64,000 nucleotides of DNA from Leidyana gryllorum EB-2025a (lineage: Eukaryota > Protista > Apicomplexa), in assembly GCA_048772705.1 (NCBI GenBank), contig JBLWGC010000230.1, forward strand, positions 434,001 to 498,000, given 5' to 3'. The notes beneath the pieces were generated by a model, which was given only the letters and a program-made list of their open reading frames with translations, made no database searches and was not told the DNA's origin. Made by a program: the position numbers and the translations under genes. Below are positions 14,590 to 61,165 of this stretch, in pieces (within the stretch, counting starts at the first letter, position 1; every line of letters begins with the position of its first letter).

Positions 14590-17500
14590 ATGCAGTTTGA
14601 AGAGGTGCGTTCTCAACACCCTCTTCCCACCAAATATCCTCCTCAGGCTCTTGACATAATTACCAACAATTCCGCCGTTCAAGTCACCTCAGAGAAGCTA
14701 TACGAGGCAACAGTCTGCTTACAAGGCGTCGCGGATGAAACAGCGATTCCTGCCTTTGCCAAAATCGCATTTGACAATGCCCAAGAGAGCAGCGTGAGTC
14801 CACTTTCGGCACTCACTCACTGATTATTTCCCCCCTCAGCGCCGGGAAGCGGCACTCGTTCTCCTTCGTGCGCGAGTTCTCACCTGGAACCCTCCCCAGA
14901 ACTCTCCTGTCAAAAGCTATGTCGAGGAGGGTCTCGCCAAAGCTCTGGTTGAAGTACAGAGTCCCCAACTGATTTGGCGTATCGCCTCTGTCATATCGGC
15001 TGTCATCAGCACTCTCGACGATGCAGGCGTAAGCCGCTGCGCTTGGACTGTATTATCTGATAGTTGGGTCTTTGCTGCAGAACCACCAATGGAGCCGATT
15101 GGTCGAAAGCGTCCATACCCATTTGAGTAGCGAGAGGGTCTTGAAGAGCCCTGAGCTACTGTATGGAGCCTTGGAACTCACCAAAGCGATCTTCTCAGAC
15201 GGCCTTCCCGTCACTCTGATGTCCAATCCACCGGACTTTATCGAGGCTCTCTTCATCGCTGGCCTCAGCTCCCCAACCGAAGAGGTGCAGAAAGCGGCGT
15301 TCCCAGCATTGGGGGCTGTTTTGGAAGCGTAAGTCGCTCTCTCTAGCTCTCTTGGAAACACTTCCTTTCTCCCCTCAGCTATGTGCAGAAGAAAGAGACG
15401 CCTGCCAAGTGCCGTGATCTGTTCGTTCACATGCTGACATATCTGAGTACAAAGCTGTCTGACCCAAAGACGACTGACTGGGAGCACTGTGTCCGGTTGT
15501 TGAGCAATGTGGTATCAGTGGTTGATGTCAGCGGATCTTTGCGAATGGTGAAAGTTGACATTTGGAATCCCCAATCGGCTCAAATAATGAGTGATTTATT
15601 GATCAAAAGCCCCATTGACAATTGGGGTCCTCGGGCGGGAATTATGGGCACTAAGATCGTTCATCAGTTATGCCGTGTGGCGGCCGCGTGTGCGGTGGGG
15701 AACTCAAAACAGGAGTCAGTTGTCAAGGTGTGCTGGGATTTCATTATTCATCATCTGACGTATCTCCATATGGGGAGGGGTGAAGAGGACTTGGAACAGA
15801 TCATCACTCAGTGGGAGCTGAGACGTGATGACGATGAGAGTGTAACAGAATTGGAGTTGCCCGATGGAAGCGACGATCTGCCAGCGGTCGCTTGGGAGCT
15901 GCTCGACCGAGTGATCAGTACTCTGGACGGAAAGACGGCCAAAACACTGGTGTCTCTGACGAGTCCAGTCCTCTTCGAGGCCACAGTGGATCGGGCGGGG
16001 TGCGGGAAACTGTACGCTGCTTGGATGTTGTTGGCAATCTTCATTGGATCCAAGTCTGATCAGATGTTGACAGAGGAGATAAAGGTCGGATTGAACCATT
16101 GGAAAGGAATCGTTAATTTACGAACGGATACCAACGGGTTTGATGCCTATGCGTGTGCTCGAGTTCGTTGGGCCGCACTGTTGTTCATGAATGAGGCGTT
16201 GGAGCATTTTAGCGACATATTGACTCATTCTCATGAATACATCCAAGAAATCATCGCTTTCGCCCATATCGAGAAGGTCCCCAGAGTCAAAGCCAAGTGC
16301 TATTTGGCTCTGTGCCAATTCACCACCAGTTTGGAAGACCAGGACGGTGACGGTGACGAGACGGGGACTACGGCGCCTTACTATGACATTCTGTCTCAAA
16401 CCTTCCAGCAGTGGTTGTTGCCTCAGCTGAACTTTGATTCAATGTTACAGACTTGCGAGAGTACCACCAAGCGGCCCTATACCTACGACGAGCAGGGAAT
16501 GTCGATGGAGATCTATTTGCGGGAACTCACAATGTGCTCTATCAGTTCTTGTTTGCCTCATTTGGGTCGTCTCTTACCGCAGTATTACTCACCAATTGTG
16601 GGATACTGCAAAGGTCTCTTGTCCAAAGTGATGGAAGATCCGTTGTCAGACTATGTGGCCGAGGCTGTCTTGGATCTGTTGTCCAGGGCCGTGGAGTGCG
16701 CGGGTGTCTTTGACGGGAGCGAGGAAGAGAGCAGGAAACTCGACAGTGCCGTGGAAGACGCGATTTTCCTATTGCGGTCAATTCTCAGAATACATCGGGC
16801 TCTGGAGACTCAGGAGAACTTGCACCAGCGCTGTCTCTACAAAACCGGTATCTATGCTCAGGGGTTCGAGCGTACTCTGCTGCAAGCCGCTGCTCGCGCG
16901 TTGTCTGTCGCTCGAATCAATTTGGTCCGAACGGAGCTCACTGAGATTGTCAACATTGTGGTACAGAGACTGGAGAGCAATGACACCATCACTGTCACGG
17001 ATCGCATGTCGGGAGGCCCGGCGGGGAAGTCTATTCTGACACACGATGGCACAACTGCCACTCTGATTCTCAATGAGAGCCGAGGCAAACAAAAGACAAT
17101 CAATATCAACACGGCCGCTGTCGAAGAACAAATCGGTTGTCTCAGTTTCATCGGTGTTACGGCCGATCGGGTGTGGGAGCACTTATCCAAAGTGGAGAAG
17201 AACAGAGTGAGTTTCTCTCTAAAAGTTTCCAAATATGAACCCTCACAGGTCGTCGGAGCTCTGTTCGCAGCCACCAAAGGCTCAGCTTTCGGATTAGTCC
17301 GTAAGGCCGGAGTCGAGGCGTGGAAAGAGATTGTTGAGAGTATCGGTGTCCGGATGATGAGACGGGCGAGACAACTGGAGGTGCCGTTCAATGATAATTA
17401 CGGAGTCAACTGCGATGCTCTGTTGGCTGACGATGAGTTTGTTACCACTTTCCAATACTATTTGCTCAGACTGCAAATGGGTTTGGAGTTAGGAACGGAG

Positions 17501-18861
17501 GCTCTGAAACGCGGCGAAGGCACCGAGGACTCTGGGATCCTCTACGCTATTGCTGACATGTGCGATCCGGCCAAGGAACTCGCCATCTTTATCGGTGGCC
17601 CCATTGTAAACTTGGCGCAGGCAGTGCCCCTCGTCGCCCAGTTTGGCGATATGATGCGGGGACTCTTCATGAAATTGGCACCGCTCCTCACGCAAGAGAA
17701 CGGGAATCCCACTGAACCCGAAGATCTCAACGACGAGGATGACGATGAGTCATGCGAGACGGACCCCTTCGGACTCCGCTGTGACGGCACAATGCAAGTC
17801 ATATGCCGTCTCGCCAAAGCCTTTGGTCCCCATTTGGTGCAGCCATTCGAAGAATTCCTCAAAGCTTTCTTCGCCACAATTTTGGTCACAGAAGATATCA
17901 GTATTGTTGCCAGGGTGAGTGTAGTGTAAAGTTGAATCAATCTCACCGTTGCCTCCTCGCAGACCGCGGCTCTGTGTATATTCGGGAACTATCTCGAGAT
18001 CAATGGCCCCTCAACATTGTCGGCTGACCTCCTCCCTGTTGCTCTGGTCTTCACGCGAGCCCGCCCGGTTGAGACCGCACACTACTCGCTGTTCAAGAAA
18101 CACATTCCACAAATGGTCGGCTCCCGCCCGCGCCCCGATATCAATGAGAACACTCTCGATGATCTCGCGGCTGCGTTGCGATCTACGCTGCCCGGGGGAG
18201 CTGACACCTTTGCCGGAATGACTCCAGCCGAGATCAATTCTTCGATCCTCGATGAGTATCAGATCGAAGTCATGAAGATTCAAGCAGCGTGTTTCTGTGT
18301 CGGTGCTGCCGTCTCCAATCTGATGGATGAGAGTATTTTGACAAAGTCAATGCCAGTTATCGATGAGGCCGTAAGTCATCTCTCTTCACGATGTATACCC
18401 ACTTCATCCGTCTCCAGTTCGCAGCGCTGATGAGTCATCCCCTGGCCGCTCTCCAATCGAGACGTGTCATTCTCGACTGTTTGGGCTGTGCCTTTGTCAA
18501 AATCCTGGATCGCTGGGGTGTGGGTGTCTTGGACGACTCTTTGAAACTCTTCAGAAGATCCGATGGCATTTCCACTATGCTGACACTGCTATTCCCACTG
18601 GTCGATGATCACGAAGATGCCTGTCACGCCCACAACGTCCTCCTCAAATGGAGCATCGTCCAACCGCCCAAAGGCTTCCCCGATATGCGATCAGGAGAGA
18701 ACGTTGGCACAGACAACGGCACGAGCGCTCTTCTTGGACCCAACGAGGGCGCCAAGATCAGATTCGAGCTCATGCGCATTTTCCAGGAGCTGCGAGCAGA
18801 TCCCGAAAATGAAGATCTCGTCAGTGATTGGGGACTCCGCTACGCCCTTCCTCGCATTTGA
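14590..18861 (+). CDS. Importin-beta family HEAT-repeat karyopherin (importin-5/Kap121-like), multi-exon
   Basis: About 1200 aa helical protein. RVRWAALLF and EKVPRVKAKCYLALCQF HEAT pair; ININTAAVEEQ resembles the importin-5 I.T..LEEK segment; acidic loop near the C-terminal third. Confidence 0.7.
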
Positions 18862-19212: not shown

Positions 19213-21035
19213 ATGCGGAAGCTCCGTAGATGGTGGAGAGATAGAAAAGCCTTGGTCGACACCCCTGATAATGCCGAGACAGTGGTAGCAGACCTCACAG
19301 CTGCATTCGTGCAGCCACTTAATAGTCGCATTGACTCAATTATATACACAGCCTTGTCTGCCATCCGTCCATTTCTTGTCCGTAGCCAACAGCCAGAGGA
19401 AGCTTGGCCAGCTCCCTCCACGCCAAAGGCCTCCTTAGAAGATCACTATAAAGATTGGCTGCCCGTATCGTCGCGCCTATTGACTGGTCGCCACACCGCT
19501 GAAGCTAAGCCCTTCCCCACTTCCTCAACACCTCTAGCCACGAGTCCCCAAGTCGAACAGTTGGCACCTCATGCCCGCATATATGCGGTCTGGCGCTCCT
19601 TCTATCCCAAAGTGGTCATGAAGTACTGTCGATCGGGACGCGAAGTCCTTCACACCGCCAACAACTCAATTCAAGTCTACAAAGACAGTAACTTGTGTGC
19701 AGAAGCAATGGTGGACATGATCGATCGCGCGAAGAAACGTGTGTGGGTCGAGACATACTGCTTAGATGAGAGCCCGATGGCGCGTATAATCATGGCCAAG
19801 TTGCGAGCAGCTGCACTCCGAGGTGTTGACGTCATTCTCAGCGTTGACGGCGTCGGCAGTCTGGGAATTGGTGGCATATTACGGCGGACGTTGCGCCAAA
19901 CCCCAGCTCAGGTTGTCTATTTCAATCCGCTATGGCGTCCAATTGGACCACTGGTCTACAGAAACCACCGCAAATTGATGATTTGCGATGACGTGGGGTT
20001 TTGCGGTTCGTTAAACTTTGATTGGCGGTCACTCCGGCTGCCTGAACATCTGCAATCGGCTTTGAAGGCTGCCGATGATGAGTTGGGACCGGCTCCCAAG
20101 TATAGTTTGCAGAAGGCTTTACAGTTCGTGTTCCGCGATACGAGCGCGTCACGTACTCAAGATCTCAATATGCATATGATTGTCAAGGGGCCCGTGGTAG
20201 ATCAGCTTGCTGGAAGTTTCTGGCGTACATTGAACGTCTCCAGGCTCCCTTTGCGTAAGTTAGATCGGAGTTCGAGTTGTGCGGAAGGCTCTGCTGCGAG
20301 TATACCATTGCCTGCTGACTATCCGACTTTTCACGGTGTGGCGCTGCAAGTCCTGGAGAGCGATGGTCGCCTCCTGTCTAAAAGTTCATACCCTCGAATC
20401 CTGCGGGCCGTAACTAAGAATGCTCAGCACTCCCTGGCCTTAGCATCGAGTTACTTTCATCCTCCCCGAATGCTGAGGAAGCCTTTGGCTGACGCTTTGA
20501 GACGGGGGATATTCTCTACCTTAATCTTGAGCGGGATGTCGGACGTAGCTTTTGACTCCCAAGCCACATTGGCTGTTCTCCCGTACTTTCTGGTATGTGA
20601 GGCGATTCGATTGGAAAATGAGATTGCTGCAGGTGGGGCGTCGGAATATGTGCAGAGCCCTCTTCTCTGCCAAGAAGCACTGTCACATGAAGGTGATGAC
20701 AGCAGACAATGTGTGGAGTTGTGTTGGCTCCTTCAATTGGGATCGGTAAGCTTAGAAGAAAGTCAAAACACTGACACTCTCACCGCAGATACTCTGCACG
20801 GCGTAACTTGGAGATTGGGTTGGCGATATGTAATAGGGACGTGACACGCTACATAAATGGACAGCTTCAGGAGGAGACTGAGCGAAAGGAGGAAATGAAA
20901 GAATACACCCTCAAAGACTCTCTCCATATGAACCCCTGGAAACGTTTTGGATGCTTTGCCTCTTATCACATTGTGAGGGCGAGCGGAGCCTCCTTTTTGG
21001 ATGGGTTTGTTAAGCCTAACAAAAATTCGACATGA
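19213..21035 (+). CDS. Phospholipase-D-family (bacterial-type) cardiolipin synthase, multi-exon
   Basis: Two HxKxxxxD motifs: NHRKLMICDD..GFCGSLN and CHMKVMTAD..SCVGSFNWD. Also MIDRAKKRVWVETY, AALRGVDVILSVDGVGS and SSYFHP. Confidence 0.88.
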
Positions 21036-34754: not shown

Positions 34755-36955
34755 CGCTACCTGCGCTCAATCGGGATAGATCACCTTCGAACCCAACGAT
34801 CGTTGAAGCTTGAAGACATCGTTGTCCAACTGTCAGTCGATTTGATTCAAACTAACGCTTGTCAAGTAGTTCCTCACCTGCTCAGAGCTCGTCATCATCG
34901 TTTCATAGGCGCCTTCCTTGGTCACTTTAACGCTTCCGATCAAGCCACTAGCCTCCAACTCTTTCCGCGTAGGGCCTGGAAGTAAAAGTGTATTTCGGGC
35001 TTAAATAATGGTGGTGACTCACGTGTGATGTCGATAGCACGAGCTGAGCACTCGTCCTCAGCGTCCACCTCAAAGTAGTCCTCGATGGTGTCATCCTCGG
35101 CGTGAATAGCGGCCTCGGCCCTCTGGATCTGAAGCGGAGTTGAGCGTGGGAGAGGTAGATCCTCTGGATAGTCATTACCGTTTGGTACAGGGCTGTGATG
35201 AAGTCAGCGTCTCCCTTGCCCTCTGCTTCCTCAGCTTCAGCATGTTCCAAGAGAGTTTGCATGGCGTGTTGCTCGTCTCTCAGATGTTGGGTGAAGTCGA
35301 AGACTTGAGAGGTGCTCAAAGTACATGACGGTCCCGTATACCCTTCGTGACAAACACATTTGTCGTTGATAGTGCAGAAACCCCGACGACAACAGTCCTT
35401 AGGACAAGCCTTTCTCCTCCCACAATTGAGACCCATATAATCTGACAGCCACCAATGGCTCGCTGAGAGTGGGAAATCTTACCTTCGTCACAAATGCATT
35501 GAGATTTCTCATTGCAGAGGCCGTGTCCGGAGCAATCGTCCAAGCAGCGATTCTCGCCGTACTCGCATGAGGGTCCAGAGAAGCCCAAATAGCAGTCGCA
35601 CCGTCCCACATCGAGCATGACCCCATGATTGTGACAGTTTGGGATGGCAGTGTCCTGCATGACGAGCGCGTTACAATCCATGCCTTCTGAGAATCCCGTT
35701 GTACACCTGCATGAGCTTCCTTGACACTTTCCACCTCGCATACATCCTCCTTCACAACCGTTGCCGAGCTTTGCCATCATGGGTATCGTCACTGCATAGT
35801 TCGCCGGCTTCATATCGAGAGTGCCAATGTGACCCCCAAAGGCTACTAGCATTGTATCCAGCGGCCGCATCAGGGCAAAGTGGCTTCTGATTCCAACGCC
35901 ACTCGAATAATGTGTCCATCCAGCAGACGGAGACCGTGTGTCAATGGCCCATGAGCCCTCATAACATATCACTCCTTCTGTAGGATCTTCTCGACAACCC
36001 CCTGTTCGCAGTAACACATATCCGATATTCACGACTCCTGCCCCTTTCACCACAGGAGGACATTTCGGCATTTGCACCGTCATTAGAGTGGGCGGAGTGG
36101 CATCCAGTTTCACATACTCCAAGGAGCAATCAGGCGCGTGTTGAGGATCATGTGCTCTTGCGACAGACAGGTGATCCACCAAGTACAGGTTGTTATCCAA
36201 CAGCACCGTGTGATGATGATACAGTGCACGGCTCGGCCTCGCGCTCAACTGTAACAGAGGGGCAGTACGGTAGATGAAAGCTGAAGAAGACCAAGATTGA
36301 CTGATACGCTTTTGAAGTTGCCATACCATCGGATGGGCCTTTGAACCGCTGTTCCTGAAAATCGATAACCCAGAGATCATCGTGGACATTTCCTGTCTCT
36401 CCAATGCCGCCCGAAAGGAATAGGGTACGACCGTCCGAACTGAGGGCATGTGCTCGCCGTGGCTCGGGTCGTTTGACTGATCTGGTGAAACCAATATTCC
36501 ATATTTGAGCGTCCGTATCCCAGATGTAACAGTCGTTCCGCAGCCCGCCAGTATCTTCGCCTCCGAAAAGAAACACGAAGCGCTCGCCAATAACAGCCAT
36601 TGCGGCCTGCTTGCGGGGACTCGGTCGGTCTGAATCATATCCTTGCTTGCCTCACGCCCCTGAGTCACTCACCTCCGACACTGGGCATAGACTTCCATGA
36701 CTGCTTGGCGGGATCTATTTCTATCAGATCGTCGATGAAGTTGTGAGTCTGTCGAGATCGTTATTCCAACTCAGCTTGGTCGTGAGGTACCTGATTGTAA
36801 CCCCCATAGCGGTAGATCAGCCCGTTGACTGTTGCATGGGCCGCATCATATGCTATTGGCAAAGGGCGCGAGAAGGAGAGCTCGCTGAAAGTCAGACTGC
36901 TGCTCAACGGGTTTTGAACAGCGAGTGTGGCTTGTGACAGTGCGTTAAGCTTCAT
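34755..36955 (-). CDS. Kelch-repeat plus tenascin-type EGF-repeat protein, multi-exon; 3' end approximate
   Basis: Kelch blades (IYRYGGY, FVFLFGGED, LFLSGGI, LRTGGC, VAFGGH) followed by EGF repeats (CHNHGV...CDCYLGFSGPSC, CSGHGLC...CICD, CVCHEGYTGPSC). Confidence 0.75.
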
Positions 36956-45191: not shown

Positions 45192-48100
45192 TCAAGTGAC
45201 TGGCTGAACAAGGGCGTGGGGTACGGGAGCGGCAGGCGTAGCTGCTCTTCTGGTTCGCAATGACCCCCAGTAGCGTACATATAACTCCGCCAGTCTCTTG
45301 TCTAGCGGTGGACAACTTTTGAGCGAGGGGCTGTGCTGCAGGGTACACTCGATGTCCATGAGAGGGGGACTCCGTTCCCCCTCCAACCACAGCTCGTTAT
45401 CATACAACCGCCGCATCAACGCGTCCACCAAGTGCAACATGCTCACCGGTTCGCTAGCCAGACGCTGCGGAATGAGCTCAGGATTTATCGAGAAGATAGA
45501 GAGAGATAGAGACAGAATGTATATGGACTTACCGCCAGGAACTCGGTGCAACTCACAACGTCAAATGTCAAGCCTGCTTGTCGGAGGGCGTTTAGCCAGT
45601 CTTTCCAGGACGCTGCCCTCGGATTCCTGACATGATAAACACGTAGCATCTCGTCTCGTCCTGAACGGTTCTCGGCCTCAAGCACCTCGGTGATGCAGGA
45701 GGCGGCTATGTTAACTGGTACAATGGAACAGTCGAGGCTTAGTTCAGGCATCATGCGGAGCTTCGTGCCTCCCATAGTCAAGAGGGCAGCAAAGTTGTCA
45801 ACTCTGTGTGTTTGTTCGGGGGGGCTGATTGAGAAAGAGACTTACGGCCATATTCCATAATGAGTGTCCCCTCCAACAATACCCATTCTACATGTGGAGA
45901 AGTATGAAGTGACAGTTGCGGTGCGGGGGTGTGGGAAGGACGGTGTGGTGGTTTACCTAAAAATACGGACAGGAAGATCAAGGAGAGTGTGTGCCTTTTG
46001 AATGAGTAACTCTCCAATACACTTGGACAAGCTGTAGCCCGAGTCGAGGGCCATACGGAGCTGTCGGCTCGGGGGTAGAAATACATCGGGAGGGATATGA
46101 ATATCGGGATAGCGATGGACTGCTGTCATAGAAGATATGAAGCAAATTCTTCTGCGAGAAGCTGCCTGCGCGTCGTAGCGGGAGCCAGTAGCTCCTTTGG
46201 GTCCCAGAGCCGCGAATCGGACCAAATCGGCCACACTGCGTACGCAATCGTTAACGTATGATTCCAGAGGAAGATTTTGATTGCTTCGCCAAGCACAATG
46301 AATGATCAGAGTGACTTCGTCGCGCATCTCAAGAAGCTTCTCGGGGTCGCAACCGGAGAATCCGGCATTGAGATCGTAAGGTACAGCTTCAATGCGATTG
46401 CGATCCATAGTGTGGTAGAAATCTAGTCCTCTTTCGAGGCATAATTGGCGAAGGCGGGGGCCTACTTGAGAAGCCCCAATGCCCTTGTTATTGATACCAG
46501 GACGAACAAGAAGATATATCTTCTTGAATCGGCGGTTGGGCAACATTGTTTGCACAATATGTGATCCCAAGCTGCCGGTAACTCCAGAAATAAGAACCAC
46601 GTCCTCCCCGTCATCGTCAAGACCGGGGTGCGTGGGTGTTGAGTCACACCTTCGGGGATTTCGATTGCGGTTTGCTCCGCGAGAGACTGCCATAGACTGC
46701 GCTCGTTGCCGCCTACGATGGATCACCTCAGAAGCCAAGGCATCGAGGTAGTCGCTGTAGAAGTCATAGACGGCTTGAGCTGTTCTCAGATTGACACCTC
46801 CTTCAGCTTTGATGTCGACATGGAAGGCGCCAACATTGAAGCGAGGCGTGGGAGTACTCAATAGGCTCTTTCGCACGTGGAAGTCGTGGAAGGGCGATGA
46901 GCCTCCACCACCATCACATCGACAATCCTCTGTGCCGTTAGCATTCACTTGGGCCGACAAGGCGGCGAAGAGGTCCTGCACTCTTGAGTGTTGATATAGC
47001 AAATAGCTGGGGATCGGTAGAGCGAAAGTATGTTCCAAAGTTCGTGCAACAGCCAGCGCCAATTGACTAGTCATTCCGAGGTCGAAGAGGGTCAGGCTGC
47101 TATTTAGCTCTTCAGGTGGCAGGTTCAGCAGGTCCGAGAGTACTTCTATGATTTGCTGGGCGGTTGGCGGCGAGTGCAGGGCCTTGAGGTCAACCAGACT
47201 GCCCTCAATCGGGCTCGGCACACCTCTGTCACGGCCGTAGAAGGCATCTATCTCTCTTGCAAACGTTGTTGAAACTAGTCCCCTGTCCACGCTCCCCTTG
47301 GTAGACAGTGGAATTCGGGAGCAACTAGGCAGTATGTGAACCAAGTCGGGGTAAATATGAGAGTGTTCGGGTAATAACTTGTTGGCTACCTCGATCGCGC
47401 GGAGAACTTCGCTCATAGCGTCCTCCAGTTGGAGAAAGGAGCTCTTTTTGAGCTCAATGATCACTCCTGGTTGAGCCTCGCCTTCACCAACAACCACCGC
47501 CCGACAGATCTTGTTGCTCGCACTCACAATGGCGCTTTCCACAGCTAAGGCATTGGTTCTCATACCATTCAGATGAACCAACGTGTCGTCTCTCCGTCCG
47601 TGGAACGCCCACATGTTCTCTCCATTCACTGTCCATAGAACGAACGAGTTACAACAACAAACCCTTTCTCTCTCAAAACAGCTCGGCTTCGGGGGTGGTC
47701 AGTCACATCACGAAACTCACGCACAAATCCATTGACGACGCTCCACCGCCTCCTCACATTCACACACTGCCACAGACGTGCCCACACTTCATACCCCAGC
47801 CACAAGAACACTCCACCGAGAAGAGACGCTCGCACACACTGCTTACCTGGCACAAAAAGGTCGCGTGTGGCATGCCCATCGAAACAGTTCCGGAGACTTT
47901 CGCTGAATCCAGGAGTGTCGTCAGTAATTATCAACTCGAAAACTCCTTCGTCAACCTCTTCTACTGGAGCCATAACGTACCCGAATGTAGGAAAAGGGCA
48001 CATCCAGGTGGCATCGGTAGGTTTAGTGAAAACACCTGCCAGCAGCGGTCCAAACTCTGTCGAACCATATAAACCCCTAATCCGAATCTGCGTCCAATAA

Positions 48101-49526
48101 CGATTAGTCGGTCCCTTCGTCCTTCCACAGCAAATTGTTGCTCACTCTACGTTCCGCCAACGAACTCTTGAGGGCGTGGTTGAGGTGGGCACCACTGTAC
48201 ATGAGCTCACTAACACTCTGCACGTCAGACCACAACTCAGGTCGTCTTTGGCACAAAGCCATGAGATCCTCAAGTACTAGTGGCAGGGTAATCAAACGCG
48301 CAGGTCGTATGGCCGATATTGTACTGTGCATTTGTGCTCATAAAACATCAAAGAGTGCGACTTACTCAATGATGTCGGTGGGGGAAGGGGGGAAGGTGCG
48401 ACCAAATGGAAGAACCGGAATGCAGGTACCGCAGAGTAAGGGCATGAGTAGGGCTGTGTAAAAGAGAGAGTGATGGGAGGGGCAGATAACAAACTGGCAA
48501 AGTCGAGTTCCCGAGTCAGGCGAAGCCGCCCCGTATAACGCAGCTGTAAGCGAGCGATAGTTGCTCTGAGGCATAGGTCGCGGCGGGCTCGAGGTGTCTG
48601 CAACATTAAGAGTGCATTTTATGATTGGCAGCAGGTCCAGTCGACGCCAGATGCGCGCGCGCACACACGAAGACACACGCCTCCGCCCGCCCTGGTGGAT
48701 GCGAGTGCTTGATCGGCAGTGAGCAATAATACACGACTTGCCTAACAGCAGCGGCACTCACCAGAGCTATGCAGTATCACAGGCGATTCCGAGAGTTGGT
48801 CTTCACGGGGAGGTTTGAGTGGGCGGTTGCTCAGTGAGAGGGTATCCAGCATTCTCATGGATAATTCGGGCAAGACGTTCACTTCCATGCGGGACGTTGC
48901 AGCATATCGATTTCTCAATCTTGGCGAAATCACTAAAACGTCAACTTCGCACGATCTGCAAAGGTCCTGTGTCTGCTTGGGCGATTTGGCTGGATCAATA
49001 ACCATCACGCGCACGTCGGCCCTGAAGGGACGCACGATATCATCAGGGCGGGACGTGGGGAGTCAGCGGGGTACCTTAGAAGGGCTATTGTCAGATGGAG
49101 ACCGATGAGGAGGTCATCGATCATTAAAGCAACTGTGGTTTCATTAGTAGCAGCGCGCAAGAAGGTGAATGTGTGACGAAGGTAAGCGTAGAGGCGGTCG
49201 CAGCGGCACCAAAGGTTGTAGAAAGTCGTTGGCTCAAAAGTGATCGCGTGACCACCATCACATGCCACAAGTTCAGGAGTATAACAGCAAATAGTGTCAG
49301 GGTGCGAGTCTACCCACGAGCGGAATACGTGGATGGGCGATGGGTATTTCGAGATATCTACTGACCAAGCAGGGTCAGTAAGACTCAAGCAGTAGGGTCG
49401 TCGGAGCTGATGAGAGGAAGTTGCAGCTCCCATCACCAAAATTCCACCTATGTTCAGGGATGCTCTGCAGGGGACGACCCCTCCTGTGGTAGGACTTTCT
49501 GAACAAGACGCAGCTCGCCGACTCAT
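45192..49526 (-). CDS. NRPS-like adenylation-thiolation-reductase (carboxylic acid reductase-like) enzyme, intron-containing copy
   Basis: A domain: ILHSSG/TSSPPRP, LYGSTEFG, HATRDLF, FHGRRDDTLVHLNG, PLSTKG. T domain: LFDLGMTSQ. R domain: VLISGVTGSLG, IIHCAW, FISSMT, GYSLSK. Confidence 0.88.
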
Positions 49527-49619
49527 CCAAACAGTCCAAGTGGGTTATTCAGCATAATCACACAACTTATCAGACGGAGCTCAGCCGTTTCGAGACGCGC
49601 AAAGGCCGCTCGAAACGAG

Positions 49620-52600
49620 ATGACCGGAGTCGACTACTCCTCTTACCCGCCCTCGCCGACAGACTGCCCGGCAGCCTCACCTATTTCTGCACAGAAGACG
49701 GTCTCCTCGGTGCTCTATGCCTCATAGGACTGATCCTCACGATGGCCTTCTATGGCTTTTGGCCCCGCGATGATCCACAACTCGACTCCAGTGTCATCGG
49801 ACCCGCAGGACACGGCTTCCCGTGGTCCCTCGTCTTCTGCGTCGCCATCCTCTTTCCCTATCTGCTCTTCAACTCGTACCTCTATCACAGCGCCCGTCGC
49901 GTCGAAGTGAGTCTCCCACCTCTGTCGGTCACCGTAAACACCACTCACCACAGCGGGCCAGAAGCACCATTCAGGTCAAAGAGGCTCTGCAAATGTACGA
50001 AAGGTGTCTCGGTCAATACGAAGGCCACAATTCGTGGGGCGATCACTCTGAAAGGGCTCATCTGGCCAACGAATACGAAATCCCGTCTTGCTGTCTCATC
50101 TCCGTCCTACGTAACGGTAGATGGCGCCGTCTCCCCTACAATTTGGTAAGCTTCTCCTCCCCCCCCACACACACACACATTGCGGTCTGACAGGTGGTGG
50201 AGGGCGACATTATCAAACTGCGTTACGGCGATGTTATGCCATGCGACAGTCGCGCTTGCATTCTGCGGCGGCTGGAGACTTCGACGGATGAGTGGGCCAT
50301 GGAGCTCAAGAAGGAGAGTGTGTGGAAACAGGGAGAAGTGTTCGGTTTGTCGGCGTCGTGCAAGTCTAATCAACGGGCTTCCCCAACATTGATGTACGGC
50401 ACTTTTGTGGCATTGCAGACTCCCTGCGCAAGCCAAGTGCGCAGATACTTGGAGGTGGGACTCTCCTTTTTCGACGACACCTCACTACTTTGTCTGCTTC
50501 GGTTCAGACGTCTGGCGACTCGTCACGACAGAGTCAGCGGATGCGAAGTCGTCTGGAGACTCCTTTCTTCGACATTGTTGAAATGATTCATTGTAACATT
50601 CTGCGACGAATGGGATGGACCTTAGTGCTGATAGGCGTTGTCAACTTGATCTGTCGCCGAATCGCTGGTTCAAAAATGGCCACTCACTACGACCAAAGTC
50701 TAACTTCGCCCATCGTGTGGCCACTGTATCCTTATTATATGCCTCAGCAACTCACCTCAATGACCATTCTGATGGTCCTGGCATTCAGTCCCATCGTTGG
50801 TCGATTGCTTCTGGATCTCACCGATCTCTGGGGGAACGCACGTCTCCAGTCACACTTTCTGTTCCACCACGAACGGAGATACAGTCGGAACGCCGACCCA
50901 AAACCCAAATCCGAAGGGGTGAGCAGTCCTTTGATCACACCACTCAGACAGACACAATTCTTCCTCTCTCGCTCTCAACAGATCCGGGGACTGCTGTCTC
51001 CGTGGCTGTCTCGGCGCAAAGAAGGCTTCGAGACGAAGAACCAAACGAATACCAAACAGGATCTGCACGGGGGCGGCTCTGATAAGAGCAGTCAGAGTGT
51101 TTCATCGGGTTCCTCCTCATCGAGCTTCATTTCCGAGACGGGTTTATCGGTGAGCGTCAAGGCTGAGACAGCTTTCCCTGCCATTGCCTGCAGCGTCCGT
51201 CGTCGGTCGACACGGCTCTTTCGATCTCTCGCGTACCGATGGCGAAACAGCTGCAGGAAATCCGCAGTGTGTTCCATCAGGGACTCGATGGCGAGTGCAA
51301 TTTATTGCACTCGTTGGCATCGACAACATATCTGTGTTTCCTCGACTATGAGGGTTTGCTCACGGAGACGTGTCAGAGAATTGAGGAAGTGGCAATGATC
51401 GCTCCCACAGAAGACGCCGACAGCGGCAATGACCCGGTGGCCTTGGCTGGAGAGGCAGTCGAGCCGGTCAAACCGGTAGTCCTCGCTGTTCAGGAGACAC
51501 GGCAAGATGAAGGCTTTCACGTGCGCGATGACGACGGAGACGAGGATTCCACCTCGTCAGACGGGTCCGTGGCGACCAACGAGTCGACTCTCAGTTCCGA
51601 AGACTCTGTCGGACTCCGATTTGTCGATGAGAGCGACGGATACCGCTATGGGAATGTTCTCAAACCCCTCGCGGTGGCTATGAAAGCCACTCAACTTCCC
51701 CCTTTGGCCCTCCCATTCACCAACAATGTGGGATGGCTGCACACTTTGAGGTTTCGCGACTTCTTTCAGCGAGAGCTATTTGACACTGATCGATGGCAGG
51801 CGTGTCTCTGCGCGTTGGCCTCGTTGACAGGAGTGGGGAACTCGAGTTTCAGTCGTCTGTTGCCGATCGTCCGACACGTGTTGGTGGTCTCCAGCAGCCC
51901 CTCACGGACAAAGGCGGTCAAAGCTGCACAGCAGATGGCCAGTCTTCATCTCAGCGAGACATCCCAAGAGGAGAGCAGTGATGACGACACCACCTCCAAC
52001 GACGATCCGGACTTGACTCTGATGGATTCGCCGCTGTATCACCAGGCGTTGGCAGCGTATTCGCAGTCCAATTTGAGCGTAATGAAACTGAGTCTCGTCA
52101 AAGACGTACGCGACAACAAGCTGCAGCTGTTCGTCAAAGGCAGTACAGAAGAACTGTTAACGCGGTGTCAGTTCTGTTTCGATGGCACTCAAATCCGACC
52201 GATGACTGCTGTACTGCGCGCTCGATTAGACGCTGTTGTGATGCAATGGAAGGGAGAGGGATTCGATGCGTTCGGCTTCGGATACACAGCGCTTCAGCGG
52301 AATGTCCAAACCTTTCTCTTACACAGTCTGGAGGAACACACAGTGGTATCGGTCCATCGCCAACAACGCCGCCGCAGCAGCGACGACGAATTGCAGTTCG
52401 TGGAGCACTGGCGACCTCTCCTCACCAATCCGGGGCCCCGATCGACTCAGCTGCGCCCGGAACCGTTCGTTCTGCCGTACAATTATTCAATGTGCCACAC
52501 AGCCCGTGTTGAAGAAGAGGCGGCAGAAGAGGACGGGGGGGTCGACACGAACATATTGTCGAACCGACCGTCGGACGCCGATCAGCGTCAACAATTGGTA

Positions 52601-54984
52601 CGCAGTCCCACGGCCATTGAGGATCGAGAGACGGCTGCTGGATCAACGGCCATCCATCCGCAACGGCCATTCTCATCCGACAATGTCTGGCGGATACTCA
52701 ACTATGACAATACGGTGGTGACAGTCGACCGATGTGTCAGACCCCCCCCAACGCTCAGACCAGCGACGAAACGCAGCTCGCTGCCACACGTTCAGAGCGA
52801 AGCCAGTTTCCTGTCACATGGCGACACGGAACAGTTTGGAGCGGAAGATCCAAACAGTGCGGCACACCGTGTGTCTTGGCTTCCGATTCGAACAACTCGA
52901 ATGGGGACCGATTTAATGCGAAAGATCGTCGACAAAGAATTGGTTCTGTTGGGACTCGCGGCCATAAAGCAACGGGCGCCTCCGAGTGTGTTAGAACGCA
53001 TATCAGATTTTCATGCCGCGGGAGTAAGATTCCTCTTGTTCTGCAAAGAGAATCTCAACGGCACACGCGCATTGGGCAATCTGTTGGGCTTAGAGACTGG
53101 ATGGAACTGTATGATCAGTCTGGAGGAGTGCGACACCGATGCTGTCCACATAAATCAAGACGGTAACGCTGTCCTCCCCGCCGGTATCCAGGGCATCAAG
53201 AAACACCTGCGCGAGATTGATGACATCCCGCTCCTCGTATCTCTCTATGCCAATGCGAGTCCCCCAACTACGCGAACAATGCTGAGGATTCTACGGGTGA
53301 GTGTGTAAATGAAGTGTGGCGGCGGCAGTTTATTCCAATCATCGTAGAAACGGGGCGAAGTTGTCACCTGCATAGGATCTGCTCTGCGGACATCAAACTT
53401 TGATCTCTTCACCGAGACTGACTGCCCCGTCTCCATTCTCCTACTGCCGTATCCTCTGTGCCAAGACTGCGGCGGTCGCCGGAGTCTCGGGGCGTTCTAT
53501 CATCCAATGCTGTTACCCGAATTCTCATTCTCTGCCGCCCTCACTTCGCTCCCCTGCGCGCTCCAATCCCACGCGGTATCCCTCCAACTCACCCGAGCAG
53601 TGCAGAGGACAGCTGCCGAGTACTACGATAAGGTGAGAGAGTGGTTTTACTCTCTGCTGATATGCCACGGCCCCGCAGCAATCTCCAGCGGCGGTCGATC
53701 CGGAACCCTACCCCTCGTTCCTCCTACAGCTTCTGTACTCCTCGTTCCACGAGGCCCGCCGAGTTGTGGCAGCGATTGAAATGGTTATGATATATTACTG
53801 TCTCTGCTGCTGCGGCATAATCGGTCTTACGCTCACTCTGACGAGTTTCTTCGCTCTCCCCCCAATGCTCTCAGACGTCACCAGTATTAGTCTGACATTC
53901 ATCATTCTTCCCAGTAAGCCACGCATTTGTTGAGAAACAAGTCTCATGTCACCGAATCCCACCTTGCAGTCCCCAGTCTGAGTCTGCTGTTCAATCCGGT
54001 CAGACCCGACACAATGGTAGAATTACCTCGAGGAATGCTCAAACGGAAAAAGAAAGAGGCACCCCATTTGATACCCACAGCTCAATCATTGGAGGCGGAC
54101 CGCTCGTCGTCTTCTTTATCCTCCAACTCCTCCTATTTGGAGGCGAATGACGGTCACGATGATGATGCCGTGGGACGCAGCAGGAAGAACCTTCACCGTT
54201 CTTTGATCACACACGCCACACGCCTCATCGTCCCACTGTTCGGATCAATGGCTCTGTGTATGGCATGGCTCTACCTTGCCTGGACAGATATGGTGAGACT
54301 TGTGTGCGTATGTTTCCCATTTCTCCCATCTCCACTCGCCAGCACCTGAACTACGCAAATCCTCATCTCCCCGAGCACCTAATCTACCGGAGAGACTTTG
54401 CTTGCCGGGAGGAATGGCATCACTTTCGCTCGTGGTTCGACGGGAATTGGTCCAGATGCCTCTATTACTCCGTCCTTACAGCCAAACCGTAAGACTGGTG
54501 ATCGGTCAAATATCGTTCCGTCGCTCCGACAGAGAAGCAAATGCTCATCACTCACTTATGGTCGGGTTGACCACCTACGGAATGCTCCTTTGTATGCTTC
54601 AATTCATAGCCTTTGCGCTATGTAGCGTTAGCAAGTGAGTCGCATCCTTCGGAGACTCGAACTTCTCAATAATGCTGGCGTTTGCGCAGATTCGAGTCCA
54701 TCTTGGTGATGCGGCCGTGGCACAACACCAAGTTGTTGCCGGCCCTACTCGTGACGGTCTTCATTACCGCCACCGTCGAGTGCACAGTTATTTCTATCTA
54801 TCAAGTCTGGAACACCCTGTACGTCCCGCCATGGTGGTGGTGGGTGTTTGCCGTGAGCGGATTCATTGTCACGATCTTGGTTGCCGAGATCTGCAAGTGG
54901 GAGGAAAGGCGGCAGCATAGCCGTGAACAGAAATTCCTTCGATTAGTGTTTAACACCAGATTAGGTATGTGGAGCCCTAAGTGA
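49620..54984 (+). CDS. TMEM94-like (P-type-ATPase-related) multi-pass membrane protein, multi-exon
   Basis: LVEGDIIKLRYGD actuator-like segment, CFLDYEGLL at the phosphorylation-site position, LGLETGWNCMISL, LPAGIQGIKKHLREIDDIPLLVSL, terminal FNTRLGMWSP characteristic of the TMEM94 family. Confidence 0.8.
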
Positions 54985-55104
54985 CACGAGTTGGGTTGCG
55001 TTGGGACACGTGTGTGCGAAATCCTGTGGTTGTTGACGACAGCAATAGCCAGTGCCTAAAGGAACATTGAGCATTGGAATTTGCTTCGACGACTTTAATT
55101 GACA

Positions 55105-58100
55105 ATGACAAGCCACATCTTAGAACGCCACCTCACCGTAGAAGATTACTTCAAGGTGTCTAGCCTGAAAGTCAGTGAACGAACATCGCTTCTTCATATA
55201 TTCTACGATCACGTTGTAAATCAACCTGATGCGGTCTGTTGCTTGTATCCGATCCCCCCTGCGAACATGGAATACGAGAGGATGACTTTTGGACGACTTT
55301 GGACACTGGCGGACAAATTGTTCGGCAAAATCGTTCACCGCGTGCCCAGGCGCAGGGCTGAAGGTTTCTCTTCGCTGTTGCAGCCGGGCAGCGATCGTCC
55401 CGTGATCGGTTTGCTATCGGATAATAATTCGTTCTCATTACTAATGATGATCGCACTGATGCGATGCGATGTTACCATTCTTATGCTTTCTACGCGGAAT
55501 TCAATGGCCGGTTTGGAGAGCTTATGTAACGAGACACACGCTTCCTGTATCCTGACGACCAGCAAGTGGAGTGCCAAGTTCGCCAAATCGAGGTCCCTGA
55601 CATTAGTTGACTTTACCGAAATGAATCTGGATGAAATTGAAGCTTTGCCACCTTCAAATATTCCATTGCGCGAACCGCGACCCAAAGAGATTTTCGAAAC
55701 GGCATTCATTTACCATTCAAGTGGGAGTACCCGTCACCCAAGTCCCATTGCGGAAACTAATCTGGCATGTGTTGTGATAGCGGACGGTGCGCAAGAATGG
55801 AGCGGAGGTGTGACACACGGACTCTCTGTTGCGCCCCTCTTCCACGCGTTCGGATTGTTTGCATTCCTTACACCCTGTCTTTGTGGTGTATCTATTCCAG
55901 CTTTTCCTTTGGCTTCTTCGATGCCCCTCAAAGCGTCGCAACTGATGCGATCTATGGAGAAGGGCCAGATTGATCTATTCGCCACAGTACCTATCATGTA
56001 CGAAAATCTGGTGGAGTATTTGGACGCCCATCCCGAAGAATGGGAGATCTTGAAACGAGTGAAGTGTACCTACGGCGGCGCTCCGTTACCACATAAAGTG
56101 GCACGAAAGATGCACGAACACGGGGTCGCCATCTACAGCGGTTACGGAAGCACTGAGATTGGTTTCGGGATGGTGGGACCTGACACAGACAAAGAAAATC
56201 AAGGACTCGAGGAGCGGTGGAAGTTCCTGAAAGCTGCCAAATACCTGTCTTACAAGATGGTGCCTCAACCTGATGAACCTTCCCTATATGAGTTGGTGGT
56301 TTTGAGTGATTCACCCTGTTTCCTCGAGTCCATCCGGAATTGTGATGATGGCTATGCCACAAAAGATCTGTTCCAACCGGCGCCTTTGTCCAATGTGTGG
56401 ATATATAAGGGAAGACGGGATGATACTATCGTCCATGTCAACGGAGAGAAGACCAACGCTCTTGCCATCGAAAACAGTATCCAGCTTGCCTGCCCGGCCA
56501 TTCAACGTGCCGCTGTCATTGGCGCAGGCAAACCAAGAGCCGGAGTCCTCATAGAACTCAACCCCAACATGTCCGTTGACACCAACGAAGTCCTCAAAGC
56601 GGTCCACCAGGCTAATCAAGAAGCCCCCAACCACTCTCATATCATGGACGAAATGGTATACATCCTGTCAAAAGGTCAAACCCTTCCCGTAACCACCAAA
56701 GGAAACCTCAAACGAAGTCTGGTTACCAAGTTATACGCCACAGAAATTGACAATCTGTATTCCGGATTGCAGGGACACCGACTGCCGGGACAGCCGCATC
56801 CGCAAATAATCAGACGAGCTCGCGCCAGCAGCTCCGAAGACGACAACGATACTGCCAATGGTACCCCGGGTACCCGCTACCAAACTGAACAAGCTGTTCG
56901 TCACCATCTGATCGACAAGATTTCTGTACTACTCGGCATCCCTGCCGAAGATGTGGAAACCGAAACACACATCAGCTTGTTCGATCAAGGCTTGACCAGT
57001 CAAATGGCGCTCAGCTTGAATACTACACTGCAAGAAATCACGGGTATTGAAATGAGTCCCAACTATCTCTTTGAGCACAGCTCGATTGATGCATTAGTAG
57101 AAGCTCTGATGGCCCAAAATGGATTGGCCTCCAGCTCCGCCCAAGACAAATTGGCGATGAGTCATGCCGCCATGCGGAATCTAATTGAACACTACCGCTT
57201 GTCAATGAGTGATATCGCCTCCGTTCTCCCAGCACACGTGCGTTCTGACACACACAAACCTGCCCCTCCTGATGACGCCCCGGAAAACAAATGCATTCTG
57301 ATCACGGGTGCAACTGGTGCCCTAGGATGCCACCTGACATGGCAATTCCTGCTGGATCCTACCGTTAAGAAGGTTTACGCTATGGTGAGGGGCCAGGACG
57401 GGTCTGGACGGATGGGCAGGACTGCGCAGAAAAGGGGTTTGGACTTGAGGATGGCATTGAAGACTGGACGGTTAGAAGTCCTGAATTATGACATGACAGA
57501 TCAGTTTTTGGGTCTGCCTAGGCCCCGATATGACACATTGACGGAAGAAGTGACTCATGTGGTCCACAATGCATGGAAGATGAACTTCAATCTAAAGGTT
57601 GAGGACTTCAACAAGGATTGTATTCGTGGAGCCTTCAATTTACTCAAGTTCTGTATCCTTCCGTTGGACCGAAGCTCCAGCACTGCTTATGCAAAGAAGA
57701 AATTCAGCTTCATCAGTTCGGTTAGTGCGATATGCAACTACCCCGGCGGAAGCATCCCGCCCAAGGTTGTGCCAGATGACCAAGTAACGATGGCCATGCC
57801 CATGGGATACGGGCAGTCGAAGTGTGTGACCGAACTGGTTATTCATTCGGCCGCCAAGGAGTTTGGCATATCAGCGACGATTTTTAGGTGCGGACAACTG
57901 AGTGGTGATACCAAGCTCGGTGTGTGGACTCCTACCGATATGGTTGCCCTACTGACCATCGGTGGCGGTGTGCGATTGGGGAAAATACCCGCAATGATCT
58001 CGGATGCCTCATTCGCACCTATGGACGTAGCTGCGGGTGGGATTGCCGAGTTGATGAGAGTCCCACAAGAGAACGGCGTGTGCCAGGTGTATCACATTAG

Positions 58101-58407
58101 CAACCCGAACCCCGCTGAGTGGGACGACTGGCTGCGGACATTGCGCGAAGAAGGGATTGATTTCGAAACAGTGTCCACCAGCGACTTCCTGAAAGAGATC
58201 AAGAAACACCCCGACAACGAGTGCAATCTGCTCGGTTCCTTCCTGGAGAAGTTGCCGGACATGCCCCTTGGAGGCATTCAGGCGCCAAAGCTGGACATGT
58301 CGGAGTCCGTTGAACGATCTCCTACGTTGCGAGATTGCCCTCCTCTAACAGCCGAACTCACTTCCAAGTATTTGGGATACTGGCGAAGCATTGGCCTGAT
58401 CCAATAG
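55105..58407 (+). CDS. NRPS-like adenylation-thiolation-reductase (carboxylic acid reductase-like) enzyme, intronless copy (~1100 aa)
   Basis: A domain: FIYHSSGSTRHP, PLFHAFG, GYGSTEIG, YATKDLF, YKGRRDDTIVHVNGEK, PVTTKG. T domain: LFDQGLTSQ. R domain: ILITGATGALG, VVHNAW, FISSVS, GYGQSK, FRCGQLSG. Confidence 0.93.
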   Translation: MTSHILERHLTVEDYFKVSSLKVSERTSLLHIFYDHVVNQPDAVCCLYPIPPANMEYERMTFGRLWTLADKLFGKIVHRVPRRRAEGFSSLLQPGSDRPVIGLLSDNNSFSLLMMIALMRCDVTILMLSTRNSMAGLESLCNETHASCILTTSKWSAKFAKSRSLTLVDFTEMNLDEIEALPPSNIPLREPRPKEIFETAFIYHSSGSTRHPSPIAETNLACVVIADGAQEWSGGVTHGLSVAPLFHAFGLFAFLTPCLCGVSIPAFPLASSMPLKASQLMRSMEKGQIDLFATVPIMYENLVEYLDAHPEEWEILKRVKCTYGGAPLPHKVARKMHEHGVAIYSGYGSTEIGFGMVGPDTDKENQGLEERWKFLKAAKYLSYKMVPQPDEPSLYELVVLSDSPCFLESIRNCDDGYATKDLFQPAPLSNVWIYKGRRDDTIVHVNGEKTNALAIENSIQLACPAIQRAAVIGAGKPRAGVLIELNPNMSVDTNEVLKAVHQANQEAPNHSHIMDEMVYILSKGQTLPVTTKGNLKRSLVTKLYATEIDNLYSGLQGHRLPGQPHPQIIRRARASSSEDDNDTANGTPGTRYQTEQAVRHHLIDKISVLLGIPAEDVETETHISLFDQGLTSQMALSLNTTLQEITGIEMSPNYLFEHSSIDALVEALMAQNGLASSSAQDKLAMSHAAMRNLIEHYRLSMSDIASVLPAHVRSDTHKPAPPDDAPENKCILITGATGALGCHLTWQFLLDPTVKKVYAMVRGQDGSGRMGRTAQKRGLDLRMALKTGRLEVLNYDMTDQFLGLPRPRYDTLTEEVTHVVHNAWKMNFNLKVEDFNKDCIRGAFNLLKFCILPLDRSSSTAYAKKKFSFISSVSAICNYPGGSIPPKVVPDDQVTMAMPMGYGQSKCVTELVIHSAAKEFGISATIFRCGQLSGDTKLGVWTPTDMVALLTIGGGVRLGKIPAMISDASFAPMDVAAGGIAELMRVPQENGVCQVYHISNPNPAEWDDWLRTLREEGIDFETVSTSDFLKEIKKHPDNECNLLGSFLEKLPDMPLGGIQAPKLDMSESVERSPTLRDCPPLTAELTSKYLGYWRSIGLIQ

Positions 58408-58601: not shown

Positions 58602-61139
58602 TCATGAGATCGATCGCGATTTTTTGGGCTTCTTGACTTTTGATCTTCGAGTGATAGTGGGAGGAGTGGCTGAGGGAGACTTCTTCTCTGCCTCCCTCCC
58701 TCCAGCAGATGTTTTTGTGCGGCCCAAAACCGTTTGCACCAAAGGGCCCAAATGAGAATGTCCGTTGTATTTCTCAGACGAAGAAAAGTGTTGTGCAGGT
58801 GAGGAGAGTGTAGGGGTAGTAGACCCAGAAGCATGTGCAAACAGGCGTACTGCCCATTTGTCATTGTCTTTGACCACGAATCCTCCTTTCAGTAAGACAA
58901 CCGGCAGTTTACGAGGAATCGAGACGTCATCGCTCTGTGCCCAACTCTTCTTCGCGTTTGCGGACACCTTAACCATAACCTCCTCCTGCTTCTTTCGTTC
59001 GCTCTTCTTATCATTCAAACCCTCCGAGCTTTTCACCGGACCTTGGGTTACAGGCGGACTTTTTACGTCTCGAGCTTTCGGCTCGGACACCAAGGCTGGC
59101 AACGGACCCGTTGGCGCGGAAGCAGATTCTTTCCGACCAGCCAGCTGATCATCTCCATAGTCAGCCGGGCATGCTGCATCAATCAGCGGGTTGTCCAACG
59201 CGTACTGCCGAAATCAAAAATAGCTTCCAAGTTTACTGAAATCTGCACTTACATTAATCACCGACAAAAGATTCATTATACGTCCCTTCAACATGGGTGG
59301 AATTTGACGGACATGGTCAAACAAATCCGATCGTGATCTTGGTGGTTTGGTGGCCAGGGAGAGATAGAAACGGTCTGCTCCCAGAATAAACGGCGCAACG
59401 TCCAGCTTCCTCGCCTCCCACTCCCGCCAAGCCAGCATGGCGACCAAAACATTCCGCACTTGCACAGACTTGTCCGTCAAATCCCTTGAGGTGATGCGAG
59501 CAGCTTTTTGCTCTATGTTGGGGATGGCAAACGAAACTTGTTGCAAACATATCAAGGAGCTCTGTTGCACGATTTGCGCAATCTGCTTGCGTCCCCGAGG
59601 TGTAGGCAACATAGAAACACTGTATATTCCGGGATTCATCCTGTAGAAGAGACATGTCAAAGGTGTGTGCACACACACTTACAGATTCTCATTGGTTCGC
59701 CCAAGTATCTGGTTTCGTTGGCATTCGAATATATAGGGAAGATAATGAGTATCTGCCCGAGCGTACTCGAGCTGCTCTTTGCTCAGAGGGCGAATTCGCC
59801 AGTCAGACCGTTGCAGTGACTTGTCCAGAATGACACCGCAGTAGTACTGGACAAGACTTGCCAAGCTATTCGGTCCTGTGAGAGCCAAAAGCTGACTGGC
59901 CAGATGTGTATCGAACAAATTGACAATGTATATGGAGAAATCCCGTTGCAACCAAAGTATATCGCTCTTGGCCCCGTGTAGTACCTTGAGCACCAACGGG
60001 CAAGTAAATACTTCATTCAACATGCGTACGTCAGCCGCATCCAGAGTGGCCGGATCCAAGATGTAGTCTTGGCCCAGGTACGTCATTTGAATGAGACAAG
60101 TATATCCGTGATAGCTATAGTCTCCGTGATGTTCAACATCCACAGCTAGAACGTGTGGATCTCGAGAAAGCACCAGGTCAACGAATTCTCGGACATCTTG
60201 AGCACTTGTCAGCATCTTCACCGGGGGAGACTCCTCCATAGGTGCCGGAGGTTGTGGCTTCCCGATTTTGAAGAGAAGATCCTGGACCGCACTCGTGCAT
60301 TCGTAACCCCAAACATCTTCTCCTTCAAACAATAACTTCGGGAGTCCCGTCGCGATTTCGCAGTGATACGGATGCGGGAACAGGTCACAATCTTTATTCA
60401 CCAACGAAGACCCGGCAGCCACCACACTCTTCACAACTTCGGGACTATTGGAAGGCGCACTGGACGCAGGCAGCCCCATTGAACAATACGCTCGGCGCTT
60501 CGCCCGCACTTTGGGATCTGCAATCTGAGCGTCCAATGGCTCCAAACTGTGCGGTTTCTCCTCATTGTCGAATGTTGGAATGAAGGCAAAGTCAAAGTTC
60601 GCTCTGGGACATCGATAGAGAGTTGTGGCTGTGGTATCCTTCTGTTGAGCACCGCCGCCCATTGTCTGCTGCGCCACATTGATGCCCGATGAATGCGCCT
60701 CGTCCGCCGTTGGACTTATTCCAGCCAACGATGTCGCCTCTGTGCGCGCTACTTTACGTCGCAATGCGCATCTCAAAGTCTCGTCCGGCTCGTCCTCGGA
60801 CGGCGCTGCGCGTTTCCGGCTCCGACGGATATAACCCCGCGCTCGGTCCACCCGCCTCAGCATAACGTCTGCGGCCTCCAGCACAGTTTGCAGTCGTGTG
60901 TGCGTATCCCGCCACAGTTCATCTGATGGGCGGCTGGCATTGGGAACAAAACCATTCATCTGCAAAAGCTCGTGCACGGAGGTCCACAGCCGCTCTGATA
61001 CTTGGGCTGCTCTCCGCTTGGTAACGGGGTTCACCGCATACTGCCGAGTGTAGGCAACACCATCTGGCACCTTTCGCGCGGCCACCGATACTCCTACCGC
61101 TGCTCCAAAGAGCTTTGTGGATGCCCCCTCGAGCTCCAT
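58602..61139 (-). CDS. RRP6: Exosome-associated 3'-5' exoribonuclease RRP6/EXOSC10, multi-exon
   Basis: PHPYHCEI, LAVDVEHH...YHGYTCLIQ, KVLHGAKSDILWLQRDF, SDWRIRPL...YARADTHYL (DEDDy), and HRDC domain (LAWREWEARKLD). Confidence 0.93.
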
Positions 61140-61165
61140 CGCAAAAAAAGCCAAATTTGTCCTTA

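Follow-up and report, generated by a model that had tools for sequence, protein, structure and literature searches.

Apicomplexans are viewed as metabolically stripped, with carrier-protein enzymes limited to bacterial-type fatty acid and polyketide synthases (FAS/PKS). A 64,000-nucleotide (nt) stretch of Leidyana gryllorum EB-2025a (contig JBLWGC010000230.1, positions 434,001 to 498,000; called the window here) raises the question as to how such a genome came to hold two genes, A and B, for stand-alone enzymes composed of an adenylation (A) domain, a carrier (T) domain, and a terminal reductase (R) domain, and what these enzymes would do there. The reading that we favor, and hold to be rather probable as a whole, is that both belong to a fungal-type carboxylic acid reductase (CAR) family that was gained once by an ancestor of the insect-gut gregarines, was duplicated, and would reduce acids in the trophozoite. 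The enzyme class is well known and the host phylum is unexpected; in the open literature, we found no report of such enzymes in gregarines or other apicomplexans.

Gene B has no introns; it lies in one frame without stops (55099-58407, plus strand; first ATG at 55105) and encodes 1100 amino acids (aa). A Pfam scan placed AMP-binding (E value, 5e-25), AMP-binding_C_3 (3e-28), PP-binding (4e-9), and NAD_binding_4 (1e-33) on it, all above cut-off, and found no condensation family. The three folds are present in an AlphaFold model (mean pLDDT, 76), which matches ANL adenylation domains and whose R domain has as its nearest solved structures the R domain of the Neurospora CAR (NcCAR; 8aep) and that of MxaA. 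A tblastn search with gene B as query recovered gene A, in which the three domains follow one another in identical order on the minus strand (~49420 to ~45260), again without a condensation domain. Pfam, tblastn, and the exon model of gene A thus bear out the two divergent, condensation-free A-T-R genes that an earlier note on this DNA had described.

An alanine scan of NcCAR found H237, E337, E433, S595, Y844, and K848 to be essential and G184 to be required for soluble protein, with Ser, Thr, Pro, and Lys of the P-loop dispensable (PMC5826065). When aligned to NcCAR, gene B has equivalents of H237, E337, E433, S595, Y844, K848, and G184, and it carries both fungal signatures, GEK and a catalytic Ser (GEF and Thr in bacteria; PMC5826065). 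Judged by these residues and the model, gene B is predicted with good confidence to be active. The residue after the A4 aromatic (PxxH) is Ala in gene B and Ser in gene A, so that neither has the Asp of the amino-acid type. In A-domain codes, Asp after PxxH is the amine-binding residue for amino-acid substrates. Ala in its place, together with an Arg after the second Rossmann strand, suggests that gene B most likely converts a non-amino acid to an aldehyde with ATP and NADPH. NcCAR takes both aryl and fatty acids, and the sequence of gene B does not tell which of these it would use.

Among 1.84 billion representatives, the best two matches were proteins of Gregarina sp. Pseudo9 (540 and 500 bits; the next scored 406), and further members came from Gregarina sp. 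Poly1, Blabericola migrator, and one Logan transcript contig. The Gregarina and Blabericola sequences come from transcriptomes of trophozoites taken from cockroach guts (PMC8051059). Next in closeness were Mucoromycota, a bdelloid rotifer, Dermamoeba, chytrids, Mortierella, Entomophthorales, and Dikarya, and the best named NCBI matches were fungal; names were assigned to 30 of the best 150 representatives, out of 1104 with E < 1e-30. The unlabelled metagenome matches that we opened were all eukaryotic. Those of 790 to 860 aa, considered as bacterial kin, proved to be exons of eukaryote genes, and a scan of prokaryote genomes with two patterns only found no kin.

We generated trees of the A and R domains from 50 rows and 812 columns, in which gene A is represented by exon 6 only, characterized fungal CARs stand outside the tree, and supports are SH-aLRT values from quick searches. 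The ten gregarine rows formed one clade (support 100 in both LG and mixture trees) in which every row is a gregarine or a close transcript and in which genes A and B are sisters (96). This clade lies inside the fungal nonribosomal peptide synthetase (NRPS)-like family, a 46-row clade with a support of 100, and groups with Mucoromycota, the rotifer, and the amoeba (84 under LG, 95 under the mixture model). Domain matches, relatives, and trees therefore agree with the earlier note in assigning A and B, almost certainly, to the fungal NRPS-like/CAR family. A single gain of the family in gregarines is very likely.

Fungal CARs and NRPS-like enzymes (NcCAR, type III; TvCAR, type IV; AtCAR and SbCAR, type II; PMC5826065) have the same A-T-R layout in ~1050-1180 aa. 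They share with the gregarine family the PF23562 A subdomain, PxxH, GEK, the carrier Ser, and the Ser/YxxxK triad, along with the likeness of the R domain to 8aep. Unlike them, the gregarine proteins have an apicomplexan host, ~30% identity, a TS carrier motif, a tandem-T branch, and a P-loop Lys that is mostly replaced, and gene A lacks the G184 and E433 equivalents; the nearest fungal kin, the Mucoromycota proteins, are themselves uncharacterized. Actinobacterial type I CARs (Nocardia, Segniliparus; NF041592) have the same layout and three-step chemistry, but the match to NF041592 reached 66 bits against a cut-off of 1300, the motif is GEK and not GEF, and a sister relation to the Nocardia/Gordonia CARs was rejected by the approximately unbiased (AU) test (p 9e-40). 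The aminoadipate reductase Lys2 has the A-T-R core in common, yet its model (TIGR03443, ~1390 positions) scored 103 bits against a cut-off of 1030 and matched the T-R half only, and the N-terminal extension is absent. An amino-acid-activating NRPS module was likewise rejected (TIGR01733, 44 versus 317 bits; no Asp after the A4 aromatic; no condensation domain). In apicomplexan FAS1/PKS enzymes with a loading ligase and a terminal R domain (CpFAS1-R; PMC2995488), a carrier thioester is also reduced by an R domain of the short-chain dehydrogenase/reductase (SDR) type, with the same need for a phosphopantetheinyl transferase (PPTase). Unlike these, the A-T-R proteins stand alone without ketosynthase modules, and an origin from them was rejected, as the R domain of the genome's own PKS branches outside the fungal family (26% identical).

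As the earlier note had proposed, we searched the genome for an Sfp-type PPTase and found one, a multi-exon gene of Sfp/AASDHPPT type (C202; L023:880-2450) with AASDHPPT_N and ACPS above cut-off and the only ACPS match in the genome. In the reading that we favor, this PPTase would prime the T-domain Ser of gene B, the A domain would spend ATP on adenylating a carboxylic acid other than an amino acid (aryl, or aliphatic of short or medium length), and the acyl group would move to the phosphopantetheine on the carrier. The NADPH-type R domain would then release an aldehyde, which other reductases may carry on to an alcohol. In the trophozoite, such activity might handle diet-derived aromatic or fatty acids or make a small aldehyde or alcohol metabolite; by analogy with the transcribed homologues, we put a role in this feeding stage at about an even chance.

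The best surviving alternative, although unlikely, is that the enzymes reduce the parasite's own FAS/PKS products or long fatty acids for a lipid coat on the gametocyst or oocyst, much as fungal AtCAR reduces PKS-made acids. The genome indeed has two giant FAS/PKS genes (C2:47159-75142 and C51:285811-308111; frames of 9878 and ~7300 aa), coccidian oocyst walls contain PKS-type lipids (PMC3760245), CpFAS1-R offers a further precedent (PMC2995488), and gene A adjoins a PI-synthase-like and a lipase-like gene. However, both giant genes have, besides a loading ligase, a terminal reductase of their own, which falls outside the fungal family, and the A-T-R genes are not linked to PKS genes. A fatty acyl-CoA reductase (PF07993 and PF03015) is also present at C224:39975-41655, and the homologues come from trophozoite RNA. 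Given these other reductases and the trophozoite transcripts, we rate acid reduction in the gut stage above a wall lipid; the cyst-wall wax suggested in the earlier note finds no direct support and is weakened on the same two counts.

Whether both genes encode working enzymes is a separate question, and here gene A departs from gene B. Its nine exons are joined by eight GT-AG introns of 42 to 218 nt, in frame and with no internal stop, and the large sixth exon carries AMP-binding_C_3, PP-binding, and NAD_binding_4, all above cut-off. Contigs of one public run (X1), from a relative that is ~92% (90-95%) alike, skip four of the introns exactly, and two of their loose ends fit the next exons. The run is listed as "DNA?"; it may hold RNA or an intron-free orthologue, and the boundaries are supported in both cases. 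Across an intron, the P-loop of gene A reads HSS-D-TSSPPRP, with Asp at the G184 equivalent (Gly in 180 of 181 kin), and the NGEK position reads NGMRTN, with Met at the E433 equivalent (Glu in 178 of 188). The other five NcCAR-essential equivalents are retained; the A5 Glu, A10 Lys, carrier Ser, and whole R triad are intact. Of the fungal signatures, gene A has the catalytic Ser without GEK. Two complete enzymes with HSSGST and NGEK signatures, as first described, therefore holds for gene B and fails for gene A, whose A domain lacks two residues required in NcCAR.

The 39 to 40 differences listed between gene A and the X1 relative change 34 codons, 25 of them synonymously and 9 non-synonymously, a silent excess (p 2e-8 against a 27% expectation) measured inside the A domain itself. 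With the frame intact across nine exons and silent changes dominant, a pseudogene is ruled out, and the position of the excess argues that the A domain still does something. Gene A is a family member by descent, which does not imply CAR activity: from its sequence, the T-R half appears intact and under purifying selection, and the changed A domain may be slow, re-specified, or non-adenylating.

A PF23562 search of the genome recovered exactly five family members on three contigs (0.3 to >1.5 Mb), so that the locus is not just a pair; the family is common to other cockroach gregarines. Besides A and B, C33 has two A-T-T-R genes arranged head-to-head, and C104 has one A-T-T*-X copy. In the C33 pair (L019; G000:C33:142700-151200), the plus copy has intact motifs and a low-complexity N-terminal extension of ~280 aa, and in the minus copy the PxxH His is Leu and the hinge Glu is Lys. 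The C104 copy (L022:900-4755) has a second carrier without Ser, and its reductase is replaced by a C-terminal tail of ~300 aa with no Pfam match.

A division of labor, which we consider doubtful and a shade less likely than the lipid coat, would make the altered partner of each divergent pair a T-R unit that receives its acyl group in trans, either from the A domain of the intact partner or from an acyl-CoA or a PKS. Each pair does combine an intact member (B; C33 plus) with one whose A domain has lost the hinge Glu together with another key residue (A; C33 minus). The two altered copies fall in different subclades, which makes the losses independent, and their T and R motifs are intact, with gene A under purifying selection; the C104 copy has A-T without R. 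Against this, not all ANL enzymes have the hinge Glu, so an A domain without it may still work, and the silent excess in gene A fits a working A domain. Seven full-length gregarine proteins from outside this genome, like gene B, all retain these residues. It is improbable that insect-gut gregarines run a fungus-derived small-molecule pathway of a kind not known in Apicomplexa, in which the paired reductases and the A-T copy act in trans to produce an aldehyde or alcohol dedicated to signaling or defence in the gut of the host.

We favor a history in which the ancestor of the insect-gut gregarines would have gained the family once, most likely from a Mucoromycota-like fungus, after which the gene would have acquired introns and then duplicated into A-T-R and A-T-T-R branches. 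Five of the eight intron sites of gene A recur, at the same codon and phase, in the C33 or C104 paralogues, which indicates that an ancestral gregarine gene gained introns before duplicating and has been resident for long. None of the sites is common to the three Mucoromycota genes compared, and shared introns thus fail as proof of a fungal donor. Gene B probably lost all of its introns through a reverse-transcribed copy. Genes A and B are only 24-38% identical, a sign of an old duplication, and the presence of both single-T and tandem-T branches in other gregarines makes the expansion older than those species.

Several points weigh against this reading. A topology with fungi as one clade and gregarines outside it was not rejected (AU p 0.32), the sister group of the gregarine clade shifted when taxa were dropped, fungal proteins reach an identity of only ~30%, and other alveolates may lie lower in a match list of which only 30 of the best 150 representatives were named. 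In gene B itself, Ser takes the place of the P-loop Lys, a change shared with four gregarine proteins from outside the genome and with 1 of the 188 other kin, and the carrier motif is TS and not DS (tolerated in NcCAR mutagenesis; 6 of 188 kin). Given the AU result and the sister group that changed with fewer taxa, a fungal donor is no more than likely; of the horizontal gain followed by duplication proposed in the earlier note, gain and duplication stand, and nesting inside fungi is likewise only probable.

The alternative without a fungal transfer, namely an old eukaryotic family retained in fungi, some amoebae, and gregarines or a transfer via another protist, gains from the same AU result and from the occurrence of the family in Dermamoeba, in a bdelloid rotifer, and on unplaced eukaryote contigs. 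We consider it improbable: retention would imply that alveolates and stramenopiles lost the family many times, the named kin are almost all fungal, the gregarine clade falls within fungal diversity in all best trees, and bdelloids are described as gene takers (PMC11258130). The fungal-type family is also found in Dermamoeba algensis (P0167), the bdelloid Didymodactylos carnosus (P0038/P0078), and an unplaced compact eukaryote contig (P0133; L033), possibly through further transfers.

Fungal contamination, a chimeric contig, or a Lys2-type reductase is very improbable: although the best named matches are fungal, the closest kin are gregarine transcripts, the five copies share introns, the genome has 16 alveolin loci, a neighboring RRP6 gene best matches dinoflagellates (by small margins), and the Lys2 model stays far below its cut-off. 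The earlier note had allowed for a fungal or chimeric contig or for nesting in a Lys2-type family, and neither was found. The alveolin loci, RRP6, and the giant FAS/PKS frames point to an alveolate genome, and the closest kin of the A-T-R genes to the gregarine-type host that had been proposed. The window lies on a contig of >1.5 Mb in a 15.5-Mb assembly, and GC3 of the family genes (0.53-0.61) is like that of their neighbors.

If true, a fungal-type acid-reductase family that was kept, expanded, and expressed would be a eukaryote-to-eukaryote gene gain in Apicomplexa. It would also offer a way into the chemistry that gregarines carry out in insect guts, be it synthesis or detoxification, which is relevant to insect rearing. 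Gene B, without introns, is directly expressible, and a clade at ~30% identity to any fungal CAR may yield new biocatalysts.

Table 1. Features of the A-T-R locus, in window coordinates.
Feature	Position	Strand	Basis or remark
Gene A, nine-exon A-T-R protein	45192..49433	-	1175 aa from ATG 49433; alternative in-frame ATG 49526
Gene A exon 1	49075..49433	-	X1 contigs skip intron 49022-49074
Gene A exon 2, ends in HSS of P-loop	48762..49021	-	exon-by-exon check; joint 48597/48762
Gene A exon 3, split codon gives Asp for P-loop Gly; PxxH as CPSHH	48366..48597	-	joint 48597/48762 in X1
Gene A exon 4	48146..48323	-	loose end 48366 fits exon 4 start; joint 48087/48146
Gene A exon 5 (YGSTE, ATRDLF)	47847..48087	-	joints in X1 contigs
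Gene A exon 6, A subdomain, T domain, R domain to YxxxK	45957..47628	-	Pfam and motifs
Gene A exon 6 sites	hinge-Glu position (Met) 47561-47563; T domain 46961-47158, Ser 47066-47068	-	
Gene A exon 6 YxxxK	Tyr 46034-46036; Lys 46022-46024	-	
Gene A exon 7	45846..45887	-	tblastn and frame; two junctions without read support
Gene A exon 8	45533..45803	-	loose end 45533 fits exon 9 start
Gene A exon 9, to stop	45192..45464	-	exon-by-exon check
Intervening multi-exon gene, TMEM94-like in the earlier note	49742..54984	+	runs head-to-head to gene A and ends 120 nt before gene B
Gene B, intronless A-T-R reductase	55105..58407	+	open frame; all NcCAR-essential residues present
Gene B adenylation domain	55190..56770	+	P-loop HSSGSTRHPSP 55714-55746; PxxH His 55843; GEK Glu 56446; A10 Lys
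Gene B carrier (T) domain	56908..57108	+	phosphopantetheine Ser 56998-57000 in GLTSQ; PP-binding 37 bits, cut-off 20.8
Gene B SDR-type thioester reductase	57295..58400	+	TGxxGxxG; Arg after strand 2 (NADPH type); Ser; Tyr 57808 / Lys 57820

Genes A and B point apart and flank the plus-strand multi-exon gene, which appears to be no part of their system; two of its exons were scanned and gave no Pfam match. The starts of gene A and this middle gene lie ~310 nt apart, head-to-head (49433-49742), or 216 nt if the ATG at 49526 is used, and gene B begins 120 nt past the stop of the middle gene (54984-55105). Long frames at 757-4497, 5757-8609, and 15347-17926 in the window gave no Pfam match. Elsewhere in the window, we identified exons of a PLD-like gene (19213-20841, plus strand), an EGF-repeat gene with teneurin-type EGF (35319-36668, minus strand), and the RRP6-like gene (59682-61154, minus strand).

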